Part shown: one piece after another, positions 54,017 through 61,956 of the stretch
Numbering within the stretch: position 1 is the stretch's first letter
Layout: every line of letters starts with the position of its first letter
Assembly: GCA_024704765.1 (NCBI GenBank)
Contig: JAKMXF010000299.1
Span: forward strand, 248,001 to 312,000
DNA length: 64,000 nucleotides
Source of the DNA: Oopsacas minuta
Lineage: Eukaryota; Animalia; Porifera
Reading direction: 5' to 3'
Translations under genes and position numbers: made by a program
The notes under the pieces: generated by a model
What the model saw: only the letters and a program-made list of their open reading frames with translations
The model's database searches: none
What the model was told of the DNA's origin: nothing

Positions 54017-54448
54017 ACAAGTTTAGGGTAAGAATTGTAAGCTATTTGTAGATTGTATATATTTATTATTATTTACTTAGAGTGGATTTCCTTAATCTTC
54101 GTATTGGAGCAATCCATATAACGCGTTTTGTTAGTGGTAATTTATTTATCTTTTAATTATCTTATCAATATTTATCTATCTTAAATGTATCATTGTGATT
54201 CTAATTAATTCAGTTTACAGCAATAGGAAAATACTAGTTTTACACGGTTTATGATATACCTCACCTTCCGAATACCTTTCAACATACATTGAACTTCCTT
54301 TTAAATATATACAATAGCAATTATCATTGATATATATGGTATCATATATACATATACGATTCCCAGTAGTCCATAAATGCTGGACAACAGTATATTTAAC
54401 ATCGATATTTACTGTTCAATAACTTATACTATATATTTGTATTGTAGC

Positions 54449-55867
54449 ATGTTTTTTAGGTACACATATATATTTACACTCTTTTTAACAACACTACTAC
54501 ACGTAACAACAGCTAGCACGACTACTGACAACATACGTATAGAACCATCAACTAGCCGATTCATTGATCAATACGGTAGAGAACGTATATTCCATGGAAT
54601 TAACGCTGTATATAAAAGAGCGCCTTATCTGCCAGTAGCCCCAGCTGATTGGGTTATAAATCAGAAAGTATTGACTAAATTCAAATCTCTCGGGATTAAC
54701 GTATTACGTTTAGGGTTAATGTATGTTGGAGCTATGCCTAGGAAGGGCTGGTTAAATTCTACATATTTTGATTCAGTAGAAACTTTAGTAAAACTATGTC
54801 AAGATAACGGTATATACACACTGTTAGATGCTCATCAGGATTTATTTTCTGAGCGATTTGGTGGTGATGGTTTCCCTTCTTGGTCTCTGATACAGGGAAA
54901 TGCAAAGTCATTTCCTTACCCATACAATGAGACTAACTTAAGCTGGGAACTATACTATATGACTGAAATAGTTAACTCTGGTTTTGGATATTTTTATAAC
55001 AATACTGATAACCTACAATATTATTACACACAATTCTGGAGTGAATCAGCTAAACGCTTTGCAAAATACTCACATATGCTTGGCTATGAACTAATGAATG
55101 AACCGTGGCCTGGAGATGTTTTTCAAGATATATTAATTGCTCTTCCATACAAAGCTTATAAGCAAAATCTACAGCCTTTATATGATACACTTTCAAAGGA
55201 AATTTGGATTCAGGATCCAGATCATTTGGTGTTTTTTGAGACTATAACATGGGATTTGGAATGTTCTGGAATAGAACATGTGCCTGGATATGCAGTTAAT
55301 GCGAATAAAACTGTTCTATCGTATCATTATTATGTACCTCCACAATTTTTTTTGAACGATACTATCTTTCATAAGTTTCGTGTTCGTGATAAGTTCAGTT
55401 GCGGAAGTATGTTAACAGAATTCGAAGCTTGGAACGGAGAGACTGATGATTTTAAGGAAGTGTTAAAAACCGCAGATGAGTGGAAAGAATCTTGGATTGG
55501 ATGGTTGAGTAACCCTTTGGCCTTATTCTCAAATTCTGCCTCGTTTTTGTCAACTTTCGCTCATCCCTACCCGCAAATTGTCGCAGGTCGAATCTCAGTA
55601 ATGAACTTTGAACCTGAGTCCAACATTTTCACACTATCATACATTACTAATACGAAAATAACCTCGAATGAAACTGTTATATTCGTGAATAAGGAAATGC
55701 ATTACCCAAATGACTTCAGCATAAACTCCACACCAACTGTGGGCATTACCATTAAACGGAATGATGATAATTACCATATTATTGTCTATCATAACAACAA
55801 CATAAGTAATAATGGTATAACCGTGAAAATAACAATTTCACCCAAGACCGAATTGAACAATTTATAA
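54449..55867 (+). CDS. Endoglycoceramidase-like glycoside hydrolase family 5, secreted; intronless
   Basis: Signal peptide, GRERIFHGINAVYK, NVLRLG, LLDAHQDL, acid/base YELMNEP, LSYHYY, nucleophile LTEF, C-terminal beta-sandwich (HPYPQIVAG). Confidence 0.9.
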   Translation: MFFRYTYIFTLFLTTLLHVTTASTTTDNIRIEPSTSRFIDQYGRERIFHGINAVYKRAPYLPVAPADWVINQKVLTKFKSLGINVLRLGLMYVGAMPRKGWLNSTYFDSVETLVKLCQDNGIYTLLDAHQDLFSERFGGDGFPSWSLIQGNAKSFPYPYNETNLSWELYYMTEIVNSGFGYFYNNTDNLQYYYTQFWSESAKRFAKYSHMLGYELMNEPWPGDVFQDILIALPYKAYKQNLQPLYDTLSKEIWIQDPDHLVFFETITWDLECSGIEHVPGYAVNANKTVLSYHYYVPPQFFLNDTIFHKFRVRDKFSCGSMLTEFEAWNGETDDFKEVLKTADEWKESWIGWLSNPLALFSNSASFLSTFAHPYPQIVAGRISVMNFEPESNIFTLSYITNTKITSNETVIFVNKEMHYPNDFSINSTPTVGITIKRNDDNYHIIVYHNNNISNNGITVKITISPKTELNNL

Positions 55868-55894
55868 ACTCACTCACACAACTATACTATACGC

Positions 55895-56000
55895 ATATTG
55901 ATTTGTAATATTGATTTGTAATATTGATTTCGTATTTATTTTGTATCTAATGTATATTTATTTGATTTTGTATCTAATGTATATTTATTTGATTTTGTAT
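55895..56000. repeat. Tandem duplications downstream of the GH5 gene: 13-bp unit x3, then 27-bp unit x2.3, followed by (TA)n
   Basis: ATATTGATTTGTA x3 (55895-55934); TTTTGTATCTAATGTATATTTATTTGA (55939-56000). Confidence 0.85.
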
Positions 56001-56125
56001 TCAGTTATTTATGTATATATATATATATATATAACTTTGCATGAATATTTTGTTCGATTTTCATAGAACACAATTTTTCCAATATTCTCCTCACGAATCT
56101 TTCAGTAAACTCGATTTATTCTAGC

Positions 56126-57352
56126 ATGGCACGACCAGCTCACAATCCGTACAAATGCATAGAATGCTTTCAACCGTTTCACCCTCACATGCGAAATACC
56201 TACCCTCGTATCCTAGAGTGTGGTCACAATATGTGTACAGGTTGTCTCATACCAATACTCAGTGATCTGACCAGATTAAATTCCACAGCCATCGGTCGCC
56301 CTCCCTCAGCCTCCAACAGTTCGAACCTAACCTGCAAACTTTGTAGTGGAAAATCTCGAATTGATAACAACAGTATAGACAGATTTCTAATCAATGATAA
56401 ACTACTCAGATATCTGGAAAAATACCATGTACAGCTAGGTTGTCAACACACTGATCTTCCTCCTGAAAAATACTGCAATGTATGTAATCTCGGATTTTGC
56501 AGTCCATGCATGACAACTCATAACCAAATGCATCAAGCTACATCAATTGAAACCAAACTCGAGGGATTATACAGGAAACTTAATCACGATTTAAAAGACT
56601 TAAAATTATTGACCTACACTGGTAGCAAGGAGATAGATAACCATTATCAACTTCTTTCACAAAGTTTGGAAAATGAATATAATTCAGCTGTAGAGAGGTT
56701 TAATAAGAAATCTGTAAGAGTTAAGAATAGATTTGATTGTCAAATAAACACGATTCTAACACAAAAAGACAGACTTAATCAACAGAGAAGAACAACTGAA
56801 GGAAGGAATTCAAGTTCACTGACTAAATCAATAATGGATTCAGACTCTTTAATTTATAGATTACAACAACAAAGTAATAGAACTGACATTGAAAGTTTGA
56901 AGGCAATTGTTAAATCTTTTGAAGATTTAAGAGTACGTAAGGTATCTATACATCCACTTCGTTCTATATACAGTGCTAACGCTAGGATCGATGAGTTAAG
57001 TATACAAACACATGACCCAATTGACGATGATAGGCCTTCTACTGCCGACTATGGGACTCATAGAATTCCAAATTCCCCGGATGTATCTAGGCAATACCCA
57101 GTTTACAACATAGATGATATATTCTCCAGCAGACAACCGCTATTATCCCCAAACAATCATCCTCTATTACCACCAATTAGTAGTTCTCAGCAACCCACTC
57201 GCTCTTCTCACAATTCTATTCCCCCTTTTCTCCCACCGTCATTTAACCCTTCAGTAAAACCTCCTATGTCTCCGAGGGGATCACCACTACACAGAGGCAG
57301 CCAACCTAATTCTCCCTTACGCACAGTAACCCATTACAATAGGAATTCATGA
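56126..57352 (+). CDS. RING-HC + B-box + coiled-coil (TRIM-like) E3 ligase with Pro/Ser-rich tail
   Basis: CIEC...CGHNMCTGC...CKLC (C3HC4); CQHTD...YCNVCNLGFCSPCMTTHNQMH B-box; heptad region. Confidence 0.85.
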   Translation: MARPAHNPYKCIECFQPFHPHMRNTYPRILECGHNMCTGCLIPILSDLTRLNSTAIGRPPSASNSSNLTCKLCSGKSRIDNNSIDRFLINDKLLRYLEKYHVQLGCQHTDLPPEKYCNVCNLGFCSPCMTTHNQMHQATSIETKLEGLYRKLNHDLKDLKLLTYTGSKEIDNHYQLLSQSLENEYNSAVERFNKKSVRVKNRFDCQINTILTQKDRLNQQRRTTEGRNSSSLTKSIMDSDSLIYRLQQQSNRTDIESLKAIVKSFEDLRVRKVSIHPLRSIYSANARIDELSIQTHDPIDDDRPSTADYGTHRIPNSPDVSRQYPVYNIDDIFSSRQPLLSPNNHPLLPPISSSQQPTRSSHNSIPPFLPPSFNPSVKPPMSPRGSPLHRGSQPNSPLRTVTHYNRNS

Positions 57353-57479
57353 ATTTTCTTACTTTTTTATGAAATTTATTTTTTCACATTTCTTACTAAT
57401 AATTATTGCAAACATCATACAAATTTCATATATACTCTTTCATATTAATAGCTGGAACTCCAATTTGGATATCACTACT

Positions 57480-59756
57480 ATGACATCATCACAAATCATC
57501 CCAGATTATTTTTCTCGTCAGATAGCAATTCCAGACCTTAACAACAACCTTCTACAACAATCGAATGCATTAGTTCTAGGTATAGGAGGACTTGGTTCTA
57601 CAGTATCTATGGATTTATGTAGACTAGGAGTGAATCGTGTTTATCTCTTAGATGTTGATTTTGTTGATCCTACTAATTTGAATCGTCAGATTTTATACTC
57701 AAAACTGGACATAGCTAAACCGAAAGCAATTTCTGCTCTCCGAGGGTTAGAACAACATAATTTACAAACTGAAATTCTAGCGTTTAACTGTGATGCATTA
57801 CTAAACTGGAGTACTGTAGTTCGATTAGCCAGGCAATGCAATGTAGTCTTTAATTGTATAGATTTTGGTGAATACTTTGATTTCGCTGTATCTTCGCTCT
57901 GTAAAAGTTTAAGAATACACTATTTAACAGGTAGTTCATATGGACATACAGCTATATCAGAATCATTCCCATATTCACCAATTCTACCAAATGGAGGTGT
58001 ATGTTGGGGCTGTAATAATTCCCCACAGAATCTTGGCGTATTATTACAATTAGCACCAAGTTCTATACAATCTCTATCTTCAATAGCCTTTATTCCAAAG
58101 GAAGATGTTATATACGGTGCACAAAATACAGGATCTTCTGTCTTACCATGTTCTATAGCTTCTCATTTAATCGTAACCAGCTGGGCTAATTCATTCTGTA
58201 ATTACACATTACCAAACTGGGCTAATTTTAATCTCAGTACTTTTGAATCTTTTTCATTTCCTGTTGAGCAGAATCTTGAATGCATCATATGTACATCTTC
58301 ACTAGAATCTCAATGCAGTGCATATTATAATACAAATAATTCTATACCTCTATCACATATTAATGGTATTACTTTCCCATTCATTCTTGGTGCAATTCAA
58401 AACCCATTAGAACCTCTTTTCTATCAAAATGCATTCGCTCGGCTAACTCCACATAAACTGGCTGATTCTAAGCCAATTTCCTTACCTGCACCACCAAGCT
58501 GTGATTTTGTATACAATCATATTGAGGGTATACAGCCTTTACCTTCTTTCCTGTCTAAGCCCCTGATAAAATCACAATGTGGTGAGTATGTAGCTTATTT
58601 TAGTGGTAGAAGATCTGTTGTTTTGTTATACGGTGATAAACTGTATAGACTAAAGGGATGTGGAAATATCTTACAATTTTCTAAAGAAATTCATAATTTT
58701 CCGATTGAAGAAACTTGTCCTGAACAATTTGAAATCAGAGGCTCAATGTTCCAGCATACGGCTATGCGAGAATTGTATATGACACAGTTGGTTAGCGACT
58801 GCTTAAAACCGCAGGGATTTATTACCGGTAATATTCCGTTGGGCATGTGGGAGTATGATTTAGAGAATGATAAAAATGCGGAAATTAAGAAATATTGCGC
58901 TTTTTATGAAACTATTGGTGATAAACGTCTTTCAACACATCTCCTAACAGGAATAACTCTATTATTACCAAATTTAGTGAAAGATTTCTCGAATGAAGAT
59001 TTATTAAAATGTATACCAGAAGAACGAAATAAGATGATAGATGGTAAGATGGGTATTCAGCCTACTTGGTCAGCTTATTCAGAGAGTCAAGGTTTCGTAT
59101 CAATTGATATATTCGCGTTTAATTACACTTTACAACCTCCAACTATACCCACAATATGTAGAGATAAATGGGAAAGTAAATGGCAAGATTTGTGTATCAA
59201 ACTCAACCAATTCATAACTACAGATTCGAATGGTAACTTGTTGAGTTTACTGTATTGGAATTTAGGCTTTGAAGTTGGCATTATACTAACTTCTATTCAT
59301 GCTAAACAGATTAACTGGGGTACATTCTTCGATCATAATCCATGCGAACCTCATTGTAACAGTCATCCTAACAACCTCATTATTCTTCCTCCTGGTTATT
59401 CGCGGTTTCTAGCACCTGTTGATTTCGATCTTAGTTTCACAAGAGAAGGATTTTTCTCTCCTTACACAAAAGAGTTGGACGATGATCTATTTGATTCTTG
59501 GATTGACATGGAAACTTCAGAAATGGCTCGTGCATTAGGAGGTGAAACTGTAAACACAGGGGTTAGCACTAGCGAGCATTTACTGCAGAAAGATTATTCT
59601 ATATTAGAAATAGCATTACGTGATACAATCGTACTTGGTTATTTAGCTGGGATTAACTGCAAGGAAAACATACGCCCTATACCTCCTTACATTAAAGATG
59701 TTCTACATATTATTATTGAGTTAGCCTTAATAGCCAGTGATAGACTAAATACTTGA
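57480..59756 (+). CDS. ThiF/MoeB/E1-like adenylation domain fused to a SelO-like atypical kinase-fold domain; intronless
   Basis: N-terminal: GIGGLGS, LLDVDFVDPTNLNRQIL, K at KPKA, zinc pairs CWGC and CIIC. C-terminal: RLKGCG, TAMREL, HCNSHPNN, PVDFD. Likely start MTSSQ at 57480. Confidence 0.75.
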   Translation: MTSSQIIPDYFSRQIAIPDLNNNLLQQSNALVLGIGGLGSTVSMDLCRLGVNRVYLLDVDFVDPTNLNRQILYSKLDIAKPKAISALRGLEQHNLQTEILAFNCDALLNWSTVVRLARQCNVVFNCIDFGEYFDFAVSSLCKSLRIHYLTGSSYGHTAISESFPYSPILPNGGVCWGCNNSPQNLGVLLQLAPSSIQSLSSIAFIPKEDVIYGAQNTGSSVLPCSIASHLIVTSWANSFCNYTLPNWANFNLSTFESFSFPVEQNLECIICTSSLESQCSAYYNTNNSIPLSHINGITFPFILGAIQNPLEPLFYQNAFARLTPHKLADSKPISLPAPPSCDFVYNHIEGIQPLPSFLSKPLIKSQCGEYVAYFSGRRSVVLLYGDKLYRLKGCGNILQFSKEIHNFPIEETCPEQFEIRGSMFQHTAMRELYMTQLVSDCLKPQGFITGNIPLGMWEYDLENDKNAEIKKYCAFYETIGDKRLSTHLLTGITLLLPNLVKDFSNEDLLKCIPEERNKMIDGKMGIQPTWSAYSESQGFVSIDIFAFNYTLQPPTIPTICRDKWESKWQDLCIKLNQFITTDSNGNLLSLLYWNLGFEVGIILTSIHAKQINWGTFFDHNPCEPHCNSHPNNLIILPPGYSRFLAPVDFDLSFTREGFFSPYTKELDDDLFDSWIDMETSEMARALGGETVNTGVSTSEHLLQKDYSILEIALRDTIVLGYLAGINCKENIRPIPPYIKDVLHIIIELALIASDRLNT

Positions 59757-60276
59757 TATTATCAGCTGGAAATATGCTTCTCTAACTCACACATTTTCCA
59801 TATTTCTACTCACGAAATTCCAAATAATCTATAACAATTGTTTAATTATACAAACCAAGTGGATGTTTTGGCTATATCTATGAAATTCTCCACAGGTTTG
59901 TAATACCTATTATCTTTATCATTAATATAATAATAATATTGTTTTTCAGTGGAGTTTGTTATTTCCAAATTGGATTTTGATTCTCAAACAGTTGCTAATA
60001 TAAGGGAACATAATTACCGCGATATCCACAGTAAGGACCTGAAGGTATTAATAAACGAATATTACTATTAAGCAATTTGCTAATACGTTAACTATACTGT
60101 ATTACAATTTATACTGGTTGATATAGGAAATTTGTTAAAGACGAATGACTTAAGTTTCTTTGACGATTATATAACTTATTAGTATGTATGTATTAAATAA
60201 AATACAAAATACAAAATACACATATTAAATACATGTGTATGTGAGTTATCATGTAATATAATTGTAAGCAGATTAT

Positions 60277-61956
60277 CTAGGTAGGAAATCTTCCTTTACA
60301 ACCTTCCACTACATGAGGTAGTGCTTGTGCATGAGCTGCTGTATCAACAACTTCCATGAATACTTTCATTCTCTTACAGCATTTATCTTGACGACTAGTA
60401 TACTCAAATAGCGGTTTAGGGTAGTCTACACCGATTATGCAATTCGCGGCTTGTTGCACTTCAATTGGAGCTAAATCTGGTTTATGTATGTATTCAAGTG
60501 GGAAATCTCTCAATTTTGGGATGTATTTTTTGATGTAATCACCGTTGGGATCGATTTGTCGTGACACATATAGCATAGGATCTTTATATTGTTTCTGTAA
60601 ACCACTTATCATTGTAGATGAACTAGCTTCCAACCATGAATATGTAGATATAGGCAAATCAAAATTAACACTGTTCAGGTAGAATAGCTCCAATCCTTCT
60701 TCCCAGCTAATCCACAAGAGACCGTTTGTTACGAAGGTTGCTAGTGATTCAGTAACTTCGTTTACGGCATAGCCCTCAGTTTTTATTTGTATAATTGCTG
60801 CGTCGAAGAAAGGGAAACCTGTTTGCGCTGCATTGAATGATTGAATTAGATTGGAGTTTCTATCCCAAGGAATGGGTAGGCAAAGGTTGTTATACGATAT
60901 TATTCGTTCAGGGATTGGTTGCTTTTGTGAGGCTTGTAGCGCAAAATCTCTTGCTATTATTCCCGCTAATGCTTGGTCAATATTTATTCTTGAATAATTA
61001 GAGTTATTAATTAAATCCACTAAAAATTGGAAGAACTTTCTTGGAGTTATACAGCCGAAACGTAGGTAGGGACTTATAGGTTTCGCCTTAGCTTTGATTG
61101 GTGAAATTTCTTCTACTGGAGTATGACGTAATCGAGCTTCTCTGTATTCATTCAAGAAAATATTGTTTATGTATCTTTCACCTCCTTGGAAAAGGAAAGT
61201 TAATTGGCTAAATGCAGTGTTAGGGAATAGGTTTCTGAGTTGAGGGATTTCTGAGATGAAAGGACATGGAATTCTTTCCTTCTTTCCCAATTCGATCAGC
61301 TGGTCTTCATTCAAATCAGGAATTACGGTTTGTATATAAGCTTCACTACAAGTGTTGTTCTGTTTGGCAGTAATTGCTTCAGCAAGAAGTGCTCTGAATT
61401 TAGTCATAGAAATAGGATCTTTATAAGTATTTGGTAACCAGAGGAGCCGATGACTTTCCAAATCTGTGAACATTTGGATGTTATTTTCTTGGCAGATTTT
61501 ATTGATTTTCTCGTTGTAGCTTATGAAATTAACATCTGGATCCATATTGATTGAGAGATGAGTTATTTTCCACTGATTTATAAGAGTACTAAGAATGCTG
61601 GAAGATTCACCGCTCAGGAAATAAACTTCTAATCCATACTCTAACAGCTGATACTTCAAATCTTCCATGCAATCAATCATGAATTTCCATCTTATAGGCG
61701 CTACAGCTATAGAATCCAGACCTTCCATGATATACACTGCGTAGAATTTATCTGGATTATGTGCAAGAGCTTGGTAGAGTGCAGTGTTGTCCCTGAGACG
61801 TAAATGACGATTAGTAAACATGTGTAATAACACTTTACCTTGAGGAACTTCTATATCTACTTTACTCTGTGTATCATCTCCAGAATATTCAGATTCTGAT
61901 GAAAATGATAAGTATTGTTCGATTGTTAGTTGTTCCAATTCTTCTAGTCCTTCCAT
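60277..61956 (-). CDS. CRY: Cryptochrome/photolyase family protein (divergent, sponge-CRY-like); intronless
   Basis: HMFTNRHLRLRDNTAL, ISPYLRFGCITPR, PIPWDRN, TGFPFFDAAIIQI, LWISWEEG, DPNGDYIKKYIPKL, IIGVDYPKP. Confidence 0.92.
   Translation of the reverse strand: MEGLEELEQLTIEQYLSFSSESEYSGDDTQSKVDIEVPQGKVLLHMFTNRHLRLRDNTALYQALAHNPDKFYAVYIMEGLDSIAVAPIRWKFMIDCMEDLKYQLLEYGLEVYFLSGESSSILSTLINQWKITHLSINMDPDVNFISYNEKINKICQENNIQMFTDLESHRLLWLPNTYKDPISMTKFRALLAEAITAKQNNTCSEAYIQTVIPDLNEDQLIELGKKERIPCPFISEIPQLRNLFPNTAFSQLTFLFQGGERYINNIFLNEYREARLRHTPVEEISPIKAKAKPISPYLRFGCITPRKFFQFLVDLINNSNYSRINIDQALAGIIARDFALQASQKQPIPERIISYNNLCLPIPWDRNSNLIQSFNAAQTGFPFFDAAIIQIKTEGYAVNEVTESLATFVTNGLLWISWEEGLELFYLNSVNFDLPISTYSWLEASSSTMISGLQKQYKDPMLYVSRQIDPNGDYIKKYIPKLRDFPLEYIHKPDLAPIEVQQAANCIIGVDYPKPLFEYTSRQDKCCKRMKVFMEVVDTAAHAQALPHVVEGCKGRFPT

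Follow-up and report, generated by a model that had tools for sequence, protein, structure and literature searches.

A sponge gene joining a ThiF/MoeB-type E1 domain to an atypical kinase-fold domain, a candidate component of ubiquitin-like conjugation

The stretch analyzed here is 64,000 nucleotides of the Oopsacas minuta (Porifera) genome (contig JAKMXF010000299.1, positions 248,001 to 312,000; hereafter the window, whose own coordinates are used throughout), and it contains a single-exon gene of unusual composition at 57480..59756 on the plus strand, stop codon included. The 758-residue product (P0001) is well supported as a bifunctional enzyme with an N-terminal MoeB/ThiF-type E1 adenylation domain and a C-terminal atypical protein-kinase-like (PKL) domain. 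A functional coupling of the two domains is likewise well supported because they are fused in two clades and occur together in bacterial operons, and because these operons add JAB, E2-like and ubiquitin-like (Ubl) partners the coupling belongs, with similarly good support, to the world of ubiquitin-like conjugation. That the fusion itself is a component of such a pathway is on balance probable, and it is the best explanation of the whole.

Gene model and the E1 domain

The open reading frame (ORF) is uninterrupted from 57369 to 59756 (795 codons), and a public protein collection holds an identical 758-residue product with its first Met at 57480. The same collection contains five orthologues of 758–764 residues with 69–77% identity to the sponge fusion, all of which begin at the equivalent Met. 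A longer gene starting at 57369 with a hydrophobic N-terminus was considered and rejected, because at the orthologous locus of a related assembly (L001) the 37 additional in-frame codons are not conserved and the frame is broken by stop codons. The gene is therefore 57480–59756, exactly the coordinates given in an earlier note on this DNA, and every motif that the note quoted is found in its place in the protein.

Both halves appear to be under similar constraint: the ratio of nonsynonymous to synonymous substitution rates (dN/dS; Nei-Gojobori) relative to the L001 orthologue is 0.108, with values of 0.10 for the E1 half and 0.11 for the kinase-fold half. Assembled contigs from four runs span the locus unbroken, with no joints and no frameshifts, a result that concerns integrity at the DNA level only. 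The 77%-identity cluster includes a transcript fragment from the glass sponge Vazella pourtalesii that covers residues 423–758 and not the domain junction, and Ephydatia muelleri has a full-length orthologue (39% identity) in a gene that spans 9.6 kb and therefore has introns. The gene is genuine and under selective constraint, has a single exon and belongs to a sponge (hexactinellid-type) genome. A merging of adjacent genes by an assembly or reading error, or a contaminant contig, would fit with the observation that among the runs recorded as RNA none contains this species' locus. However, the same 758–764-residue ORF is present in at least six related assemblies with the flanking animal genes conserved, independent run contigs cross the junction without joints or indels, ORFs in protist transcriptomes hold both domains, and purifying selection acts on both halves; we regard an artefact as very improbable indeed. 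The intact ORF, the orthologues and the protist ORFs bear out the single-gene fusion of an E1 and a kinase-fold domain that the earlier note had proposed.

The E1 domain occupies residues 1–285 (57480..58334; this and all following features of the gene are on the plus strand) and matches Pfam ThiF (PF00899) at 1.3e-27. NCBIfam ThiF/MoeB models match the same residues below their equivalog cut-offs, and the closest solved relatives by sequence are E. coli ThiF and MoeB (1.9e-11). We aligned the E1 domains of 14 fusions with those of two stand-alone relatives of the same subfamily, from Protocruzia and Balamuthia (the Balamuthia protein is called 'NEDD8-activating protein uba3' in its public record). 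The nucleotide-binding loop GIGGLG (residues 34–39; 57579..57596) reads GxGGxG in all fused and stand-alone members, and the ATP/ribose/phosphate-binding motif DVDFVDPTNLNRQ (residues 58–70; 57651..57689), which aligns with DDDDVHLSNLQRQ of E. coli ThiF, is conserved across the subfamily and is followed by K82 (in KPK, residues 80–82). The Mg-binding/catalytic Asp of the adenylation site is D128 (in NCIDFGE; 57861..57863), which aligns with the Asp of 'DCTD' in ThiF and lies in a column kept as 'FN.iD.G' in all 16 sequences. The complete adenylation site (G34–G39, D58/D60, N66–Q70, K82 and D128) thus aligns with E. coli ThiF and is conserved throughout the 16, as expected from the full E1/MoeB ATP-binding set recognized in the earlier note.

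Three cysteine features are of note. A first CxxC pair (CWGC, residues 175–178; 58002..58013), a putative zinc site read directly from the sequence, is present in sponges and gone from most protist fusions, and a second pair that is also a direct reading (CIIC, residues 268–271; 58281..58292) is partly conserved among the fusions. The third is C224 within 'GSSVLPCS' (58149..58151), part of a 'GSxVxPC' column found in at least 14 of the 16 aligned sequences, which makes it a candidate for the E1 thioester cysteine, with a catalytic role suggested by its conservation. The E1 fold also matches MccB, PaaA and TcdA, and its matches include BubCD and bacterial E1-E2-Ubl structures. The E1 half is thus an ordinary member of the ThiF/MoeB superfamily. 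Compared with MoeB and ThiF of E. coli, no MoaD/ThiS partner or rhodanese domain is evident for the sponge fusion, and unlike them the E1s of the sponge-type subfamily carry a distinctive conserved 'GSxVxPC' cysteine and come with a kinase-fold domain, either fused or as a partner.

The kinase-fold domain and its relation to SelO

Residues 290–758 (58347..59753) have no match in Pfam, NCBIfam or, by sequence, the PDB. A domain-only AlphaFold2 (AF2) model has a predicted local distance difference test score (pLDDT) of 79.6 and a predicted template modelling score (pTM) of 0.87, and the full-length model has a pTM of 0.73. The kinase-like fold is regarded as established because the AF2 models match kinase-like folds only. 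Foldseek retrieves Bud32/PRPK, maltokinase and others at E ~2e-3, and a shape search of the Atlas returns the domain's own family first, followed by Bud32/RIO/Kdo kinases; a structural search had been proposed in the earlier note for the C-terminal domain, and a kinase fold is what it finds. Pkinase-clan Pfam models match none of 97 aligned family members. Within the PKL superfamily, to which it belongs, the kinase-fold half lies outside the described families.

The active-site residues were assigned from an alignment of these 97 sequences and from the secondary structure of the model. LKGCG (residues 391–395; 58650..58664) lies on the strand at 387–392, with K392 as the β3 Lys equivalent; K392 and G393 are present in all 97 sequences and C394 in 92. 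The αC Glu equivalent is E431 (58770..58772) in AMRE (RE being residues 430–431) on the helix at 425–445, a position that is Glu in 92 of the 97. The catalytic-loop equivalent, placed by its alignment columns, is HCNSHPNN (residues 625–632; 59352..59375), with H625 conserved in 95 sequences, C626 in 91, N627 in 96, H629 in 96 and N632 in all 97; the N631 column has Asn in 86 and Asp in ten. DFD (residues 648–650; 59421..59429) provides the DFG-Asp equivalent and a second conserved Asp, each present in 96 of the 97. The invariant or near-invariant set comprises S375-G376-x-R378-S379, R390-L-K392-G393-C394-G395, R420-G421 and E431 on the N-lobe side, then N451, Y459, C473, R483, W613-G614 and D618, and H625-C626-N627-x-H629-x-N631-N632, D648-x-D650, E678 and D715 on the C-lobe side. 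The sponge protein has all of it. By their order and the modelled secondary structure, K392, E431, N632 and D648 would correspond to the β3 Lys, αC Glu, metal-binding Asn and DFG Asp.

These four residues are shared with canonical protein kinases, whereas the HRD Asp and the glycine-rich loop are not. The HRD catalytic-Asp position is occupied by N627 (H625-C-N627), and there is no GxGxxG loop, the corresponding region reading S375-G-x-R-S379. Bud32/RIO/WaaP (Kdo-type) kinases and Bub1/BubR1 keep the catalytic Asp (HGD/HRD), unlike the PKL family, and in comparison with them the PKL domain is larger by ~200 residues through inserts and has no detectable sequence similarity. The Asn at the HRD position in 96 of 97 members and the missing glycine-rich loop would also suit a dead pseudokinase that serves the E1 as a scaffold or substrate-recognition module. 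This is a quite improbable explanation, because the β3 Lys, αC Glu, metal Asn and DFG-type Asp vary little or not at all, and ~25 further cleft positions are near-invariant across distant eukaryotes and bacteria, a pattern typical of an active site; active atypical PKL enzymes without an HRD Asp are also known, e.g. SelO and SidJ. The domain therefore looks like an active ATP/Mg site with non-standard catalysis, such as the lack of the usual catalytic base suggests. It may, for example, transfer to a carboxylate or a phosphate, acceptors for which a general base is not required. Legionella SidJ reportedly has a kinase fold that lacks classical phosphotransfer and activates a protein carboxylate with ATP. 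Chemistry of this type needs no general base and is therefore compatible with Asn at both candidate base positions, but the likeness to SidJ is one of chemistry only.

The earlier note had assigned the C-terminal domain specifically to SelO, and this part of its interpretation fares less well. Five short motifs do occur in the same order as in SelO (LKGxG, [DR]G..[ST]xxRE, R-φ-G after β5, HxxxxxxN and D[FY][GD]), so the motif order stands. The spacing differs in one place, where 15 residues separate the catalytic loop from DFD in the PKL family and eight in SelO, and profiles lend the resemblance no support. The Pfam SelO model (PF02696) matches none of the 97 family members at E≤1, and neither phmmer nor family-profile searches of the PDB retrieved SelO chains. 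We also compared the family profile by hhalign with two SelO profiles, one from an enterobacterial alignment and one of 79 diverse sequences from metagenomic loci (some of the contigs in it, e.g. L005 and L008, are from human-gut metagenome bacteria and are 98–99% identical to E. coli selO). Runs with the whole domain, the N-lobe and the C-lobe in local and global modes gave probabilities of 0.1–0.6%, and the motifs were never aligned. No sequence-profile relationship between SelO/YdiU and the PKL family is thus detectable. A tblastn search of plasmids with E. coli SelO for MchC-like bridging sequences returned only orthodox SelO. The position of the SelO catalytic Asp (..TDN..) is Asn in the sponge protein (N631), and C394, C473 and C626 are conserved in the PKL family and absent from SelO.

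Taken in full, the two-step nucleotidyl transfer suggested in the earlier note would mean that the C-terminal domain is a pseudokinase of the SelO type, with ATP bound in the flipped orientation and hydroxyls as its AMPylation targets. The fusion would then carry out two successive AMP transfers on one substrate, one by the E1 to a carboxylate and one by the SelO-like domain to a side chain. The colinear motifs are consistent with this, as are the ESM-feature neighbours, of which MchC/SelO-like clusters are the nearest named (0.92–0.94, with 173–182 shared features) and the next named families (Kdo/AceK) score 0.80. Several invariant Arg residues lie around the nucleotide site, and the SelO structure of 2018 reportedly has Arg residues around its nucleotide site as well. 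The negative Pfam, hhalign and PDB results tell against it, however, as does the Asn at the catalytic-Asp position in 86 of the 97 members, and in structure comparisons Bub1, Bud32, BubR1 and WaaP equal SelO on Z, with SelO missing from the Atlas shape list. On these models, structure does not appear to single out SelO among kinase-like folds. We consider the double AMP-transfer scheme unlikely and SelO-type chemistry in the PKL domain somewhat less so, if still doubtful; whether the family is closer kin to SelO than to other kinase-like families is an even call.

Family distribution, bacterial operons and the sponge locus

A profile search of 1.84 billion cluster representatives (50% identity clusters) finds 1060 PKL clusters at E≤0.001 and 302 at E≤1e-30. 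The family is almost entirely eukaryotic, and most members are stand-alone proteins of 450–600 residues. Named members are from Rotifera, ciliates, Paramoeba, Pterocystis, Diplonema, Lacrimia and Lapot, as well as from Prorocentrum, Platysulcus, Paratrimastix, Vazella and Ephydatia. Of the 150 best cluster representatives, 11 (among them the sponge cluster) have the E1-PKL architecture. It occurs in sponges, in diplonemids, in a centrohelid (Pterocystis) and in a transcript of the Marine Microbial Eukaryote Transcriptome Sequencing Project (MMETSP), which gives the fusion the phyletic spread that the earlier note had set out to be checked. Complete transcriptome ORFs with both domains are available from Pterocystis, Lacrimia and Diplonema ambulator, together with a gene in Diplonema papillatum. 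In a FastTree phylogeny of the kinase-fold domain the sponge and protist fusions fall into two separate well-supported clades, both of which also contain stand-alone members, which means that either the fusion arose twice or it was split repeatedly. Both clades have their fused E1 from one and the same subfamily. Now and then the PKL domain has a different N-terminal partner (acylphosphatase, ADH_zinc_N, rhomboid and a weak DDHD match in P0057, P0092, P0146 and P0071), and it is itself always C-terminal. Two proteins, P0053 (Paratrimastix) and P0170 (Diplonema), are named 'Adenylyltransferase and sulfurtransferase MOCS3-1' in public records; the name of P0053 seems to have been carried over from a fused relative, because this protein matched the kinase-fold profile only and not the E1 profile. 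A viral origin was considered and rejected, as no relative was found in IMG/VR.

The C-terminal position of the PKL domain is strict. In all 121 members with a matched domain end, the domain stops three or fewer residues from the end of the protein, and the family tail has a fixed length of ~6 residues beyond the last helix. The final residue is Ala in 83 of the 121, Gly in nine, Ser in nine, Thr in seven and Cys in four, and the last two residues are [IV]A in 63. In the sponge protein the tail past the last helix is SDRLNT (residues 753–758; 59736..59753). The tail in the AF2 models has pLDDT values of 72–82 compared with ~95 for the last helix, the value of 82 being that of the full-length model.

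Bacterial relatives are few. We scanned 185,579 prokaryotic species genomes with a single peptide pattern (HCN[AS]Hx[ND]N...) and obtained a single locus, which lies on a 7.5-kb contig from an Aminicenantes metagenome-assembled genome (MAG; L004); divergent members may be missed because only one pattern was used. The kinase-fold domain here is the C-terminal part of a 669-residue protein with a JAB metallopeptidase at its N-terminus (PADLOC JAB, 7.9e-5), and five more JAB-PKL proteins are among the family matches. Their N-terminal alignment has the full JAMM motif (E...HxH...S..D) as an invariant feature, and the corresponding profile matches an Rpn11-like protein at 5.5e-12, and also Rpn11, AMSH, BRCC36 and CSN5. 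The JAB-fused members form a clade separate from the eukaryotic PKL domains in the FastTree phylogeny. The relatives in protists and in prokaryote-like contigs agree with the protist or bacterial link suggested in the earlier note.

The JAB-PKL fusion is encoded in four prokaryote-like contigs (L004, L085, L086 and L087), and three of these (L004, L085 and L086) have the same genes upstream on the same strand: an ORF of 73–76 codons, a ThiF protein of 596–612 residues, and one or two conserved proteins of ~142 residues. The short contig L087 has only part of the 142-residue E2-like gene upstream, at the contig edge. In the 142-residue proteins H83, C92 and C103 are invariant, and their ESM-feature neighbours are bacterial E2 and E2-CBASS clusters (0.90–0.91); the small ORFs end in RVAK, QAVK and EGGR. 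We infer that the former are E2-like and the latter Ubl-like. PADLOC E1-E2 and JAB models give weak matches in the operons, and none of the full PADLOC system models or NCBIfam models match them.

Several other features of these contigs are worth recording. The E2-like gene is present as tandem paralogues in L085 (2814–3239 and 3327–3758) and in single copy in the other contigs. The N-terminal half of the operon ThiF proteins (in L004 the first 320 residues of ORF1, 736–1700) looks like a second, degenerate Rossmann/E1 repeat ('RQYG...ILIIGDNE'), a layout that would resemble the pseudo-dimeric eukaryotic E1s, and phmmer finds no more than a faint second domain, in L086. Downstream of the JAB-PKL gene are an FtsK/SpoIIIE ATPase and a PLD-family nuclease-like gene in L085 (5959–8288), and a 613-residue VWA-domain protein and a small membrane protein in L004 (5598–7439). 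These resemble a defence-island context and are not conserved between the contigs.

At the sponge locus, four consecutive single-ORF genes occupy 54377–61956: a GH5 glycosidase with a GH5 C-terminal domain, a RING protein, the E1-PKL fusion and, on the minus strand, a photolyase/cryptochrome. The region is intron-poor and compact, and the neighbours are ordinary animal genes, each of a single exon. The order GH5, RING, fusion, photolyase is repeated in L001, a contig of 789 kb. The RING neighbour (56126–57352, plus strand, 128 bp upstream of the fusion gene) encodes a 408-residue TRIM-like protein with RING, B-box-like and coiled-coil segments, whose Pfam RING matches are all under threshold (7.8e-4); L001 has a 400-residue gene at the same place with no Pfam match on record. 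The position of an E3-type gene beside an E1-type gene may be coincidence. A second ubiquitin-related neighbour is found in a second sponge, where a zf-UBP/UCH gene (a ubiquitin-specific-protease (USP)-type deubiquitinase) adjoins the Ephydatia muelleri orthologue (L002, 18177–25658) on the opposite strand, and this too is possibly coincidental. Near the 5′ end of the photolyase gene, run contigs reach 4–10 times the local depth across ~160 bp with many mismatches (61750–61949), probably because of a short dispersed repeat.

A proposed role and comparison with known conjugation systems

The JAB, E2-like and Ubl-like bacterial partners, together with the conserved tail, point to ubiquitin-like conjugation and not to a generic double AMP transfer. 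In such a pathway the E1 domain would adenylate the C-terminal carboxylate of a protein and probably hand it to C224, and the PKL domain would be the ATP-using partner, transferring phosphate or nucleotide to the Ubl, to a target or to itself. In the version that we favour, and then only tentatively, the E1 substrate may be the PKL domain's own conserved C-terminal tail. By analogy with Cap2 and cGAS-like enzymes, the tail would be handled in trans within an E1 dimer, and the enzyme would be primed or tethered by its own conjugation. In an alternative that we hold just as tentatively, the E1 substrate would instead be a separate small Ubl, and the role of the PKL domain would be to modify this Ubl or the Ubl's target. 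A broader and rather unlikely form of the self-conjugation proposal is that eukaryotes, sponges and rotifers included, have inherited from bacterial ubiquitin-like conflict systems a conjugation pathway whose modifier is a kinase-fold enzyme and not a β-grasp protein. Its dedicated E1, fused in sponges, diplonemids and centrohelids, would activate the enzyme's own conserved C-terminus, after which the enzyme would become covalently linked to targets, or be turned on, in a eukaryotic parallel to bacterial 'cGASylation'.

Several observations weigh against placing the sponge gene in a conjugation pathway, or against particular versions of it. The sponge tails finish with T, TT, AA or S in place of the family's usual [IV]A, so self-tail activation is least certain for this gene. 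The tails of the bacterial JAB-PKL proteins are not conserved and their operons hold a separate Ubl-like ORF, and a separate Ubl is therefore favoured as the E1 substrate in bacteria. No match in Pfam, NCBIfam or, by sequence, the PDB backs the reading of the small operon proteins as E2-like and Ubl-like, which was made from their size, position and motifs and from one language-model search. It is uncertain to which taxa the metagenomic contigs belong, L004 alone carrying a MAG label. The sponge E1 scores 34 bits against the operon E1s and 47 bits against E. coli ThiF/MoeB; being no closer to the former, it gives no support for common descent of the E1-PKL pair or for co-inheritance with the bacterial operon E1. 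Finally, the four adjacent genes examined at the sponge locus are not Ubl, E2 or JAB genes (no search for these was made across the 64-kb window), and the absence of the locus from the RNA runs, described above, applies here also.

The same E1 and kinase folds occur in small-molecule and peptide biosynthesis, and the fusion could be a biosynthetic enzyme with a ThiF-like domain as in MccB, PaaA, TcdA or the sulfur-carrier pathways and a substrate kinase that acts as in lanthipeptide or Kdo/aminoglycoside-type kinases. The E1 domain is nearest to ThiF/MoeB and also matches those three proteins, the PKL fold matches include WaaP, maltokinase, aminoglycoside/choline kinases and the lanthipeptide kinase domains LxmK and CurKC, and the acylphosphatase and ADH_zinc_N partners look metabolic. 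Nonetheless, the only other recurrent partner of the PKL domain is a JAB peptidase of the Rpn11/AMSH deubiquitinase type, in operons with E1, E2-like and Ubl-like genes, no biosynthetic neighbours were seen, and the strict C-terminal position and conserved terminal Ala would be unexplained. A biosynthetic role therefore seems improbable, and a component of ubiquitin-like conjugation is the explanation that we prefer.

E1s and kinase-fold enzymes are among the most-studied protein-modification machineries, and their conserved genetic coupling is undescribed as far as the searchable literature shows. No description was found in the full-text literature searched, a body of text that leaves many subscription papers outside it; the Bub preprint does not contain the word 'kinase', and a 2006 survey of prokaryotic E1/JAB neighbourhoods mentions no such kinase. 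Together with the lack of a Pfam or NCBIfam model for the C-terminal domain, this agrees with the earlier note's view of the fusion as uncharacterized. A large eukaryote-wide family (>1000 clusters) thus has no model in either database, and its linkage to E1, JAB, E2-like and Ubl-like proteins is a testable entry into its function. If the fused E1 does activate its own tail, the Cap2-cGAS principle would extend from bacterial immunity to animals and protists; if that reading is false, this would still be a new accessory enzyme of ubiquitin-like pathways.

The closest parallels are with two groups of bacterial conjugation systems. The first is the type II cyclic oligonucleotide-based antiphage signaling system (CBASS), in which the cGAS-like enzyme has a conserved C-terminus (e.g. 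'...GRFA' in E. cloacae CdnD) that Cap2 takes into its E1 site, adenylates and conjugates, the JAB protein Cap3 reversing the reaction (bioRxiv 10.1101/2022.03.31.486616). Both type II CBASS (where Cap2 is an E2-E1 and Cap3 a JAB protein) and the PKL family link an E1 and a JAB protein genetically to an enzyme that uses nucleotides and does not belong to the β-grasp proteins, although this holds for the PKL family and not for the sponge gene alone. A conserved tail with a small residue at its end may be a further likeness: most eukaryotic PKL members have one, whereas the sponge protein ends in Thr and the bacterial JAB-PKL tails are not conserved. There are also differences: the CBASS enzyme is a Pol-β-type cyclase whereas the PKL enzyme has a kinase fold, the bacterial PKL operons hold a separate small Ubl-like ORF, the eukaryotic E1 is fused to the enzyme, and no cyclic-nucleotide effector is seen with the PKL family. 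The second parallel is with the Bil/Bub operons (Ubl, E1, E2 and peptidase), whose order is the same as that in L004, L085 and L086 (Ubl-like, E1, E2-like, JAB-containing), except that the JAB peptidase of the latter bears a 430-residue kinase-fold domain. The coupling most resembles the Cap2/Cap3-CD-NTase and Bil/Bub operons and differs from them in the enzyme at the centre.

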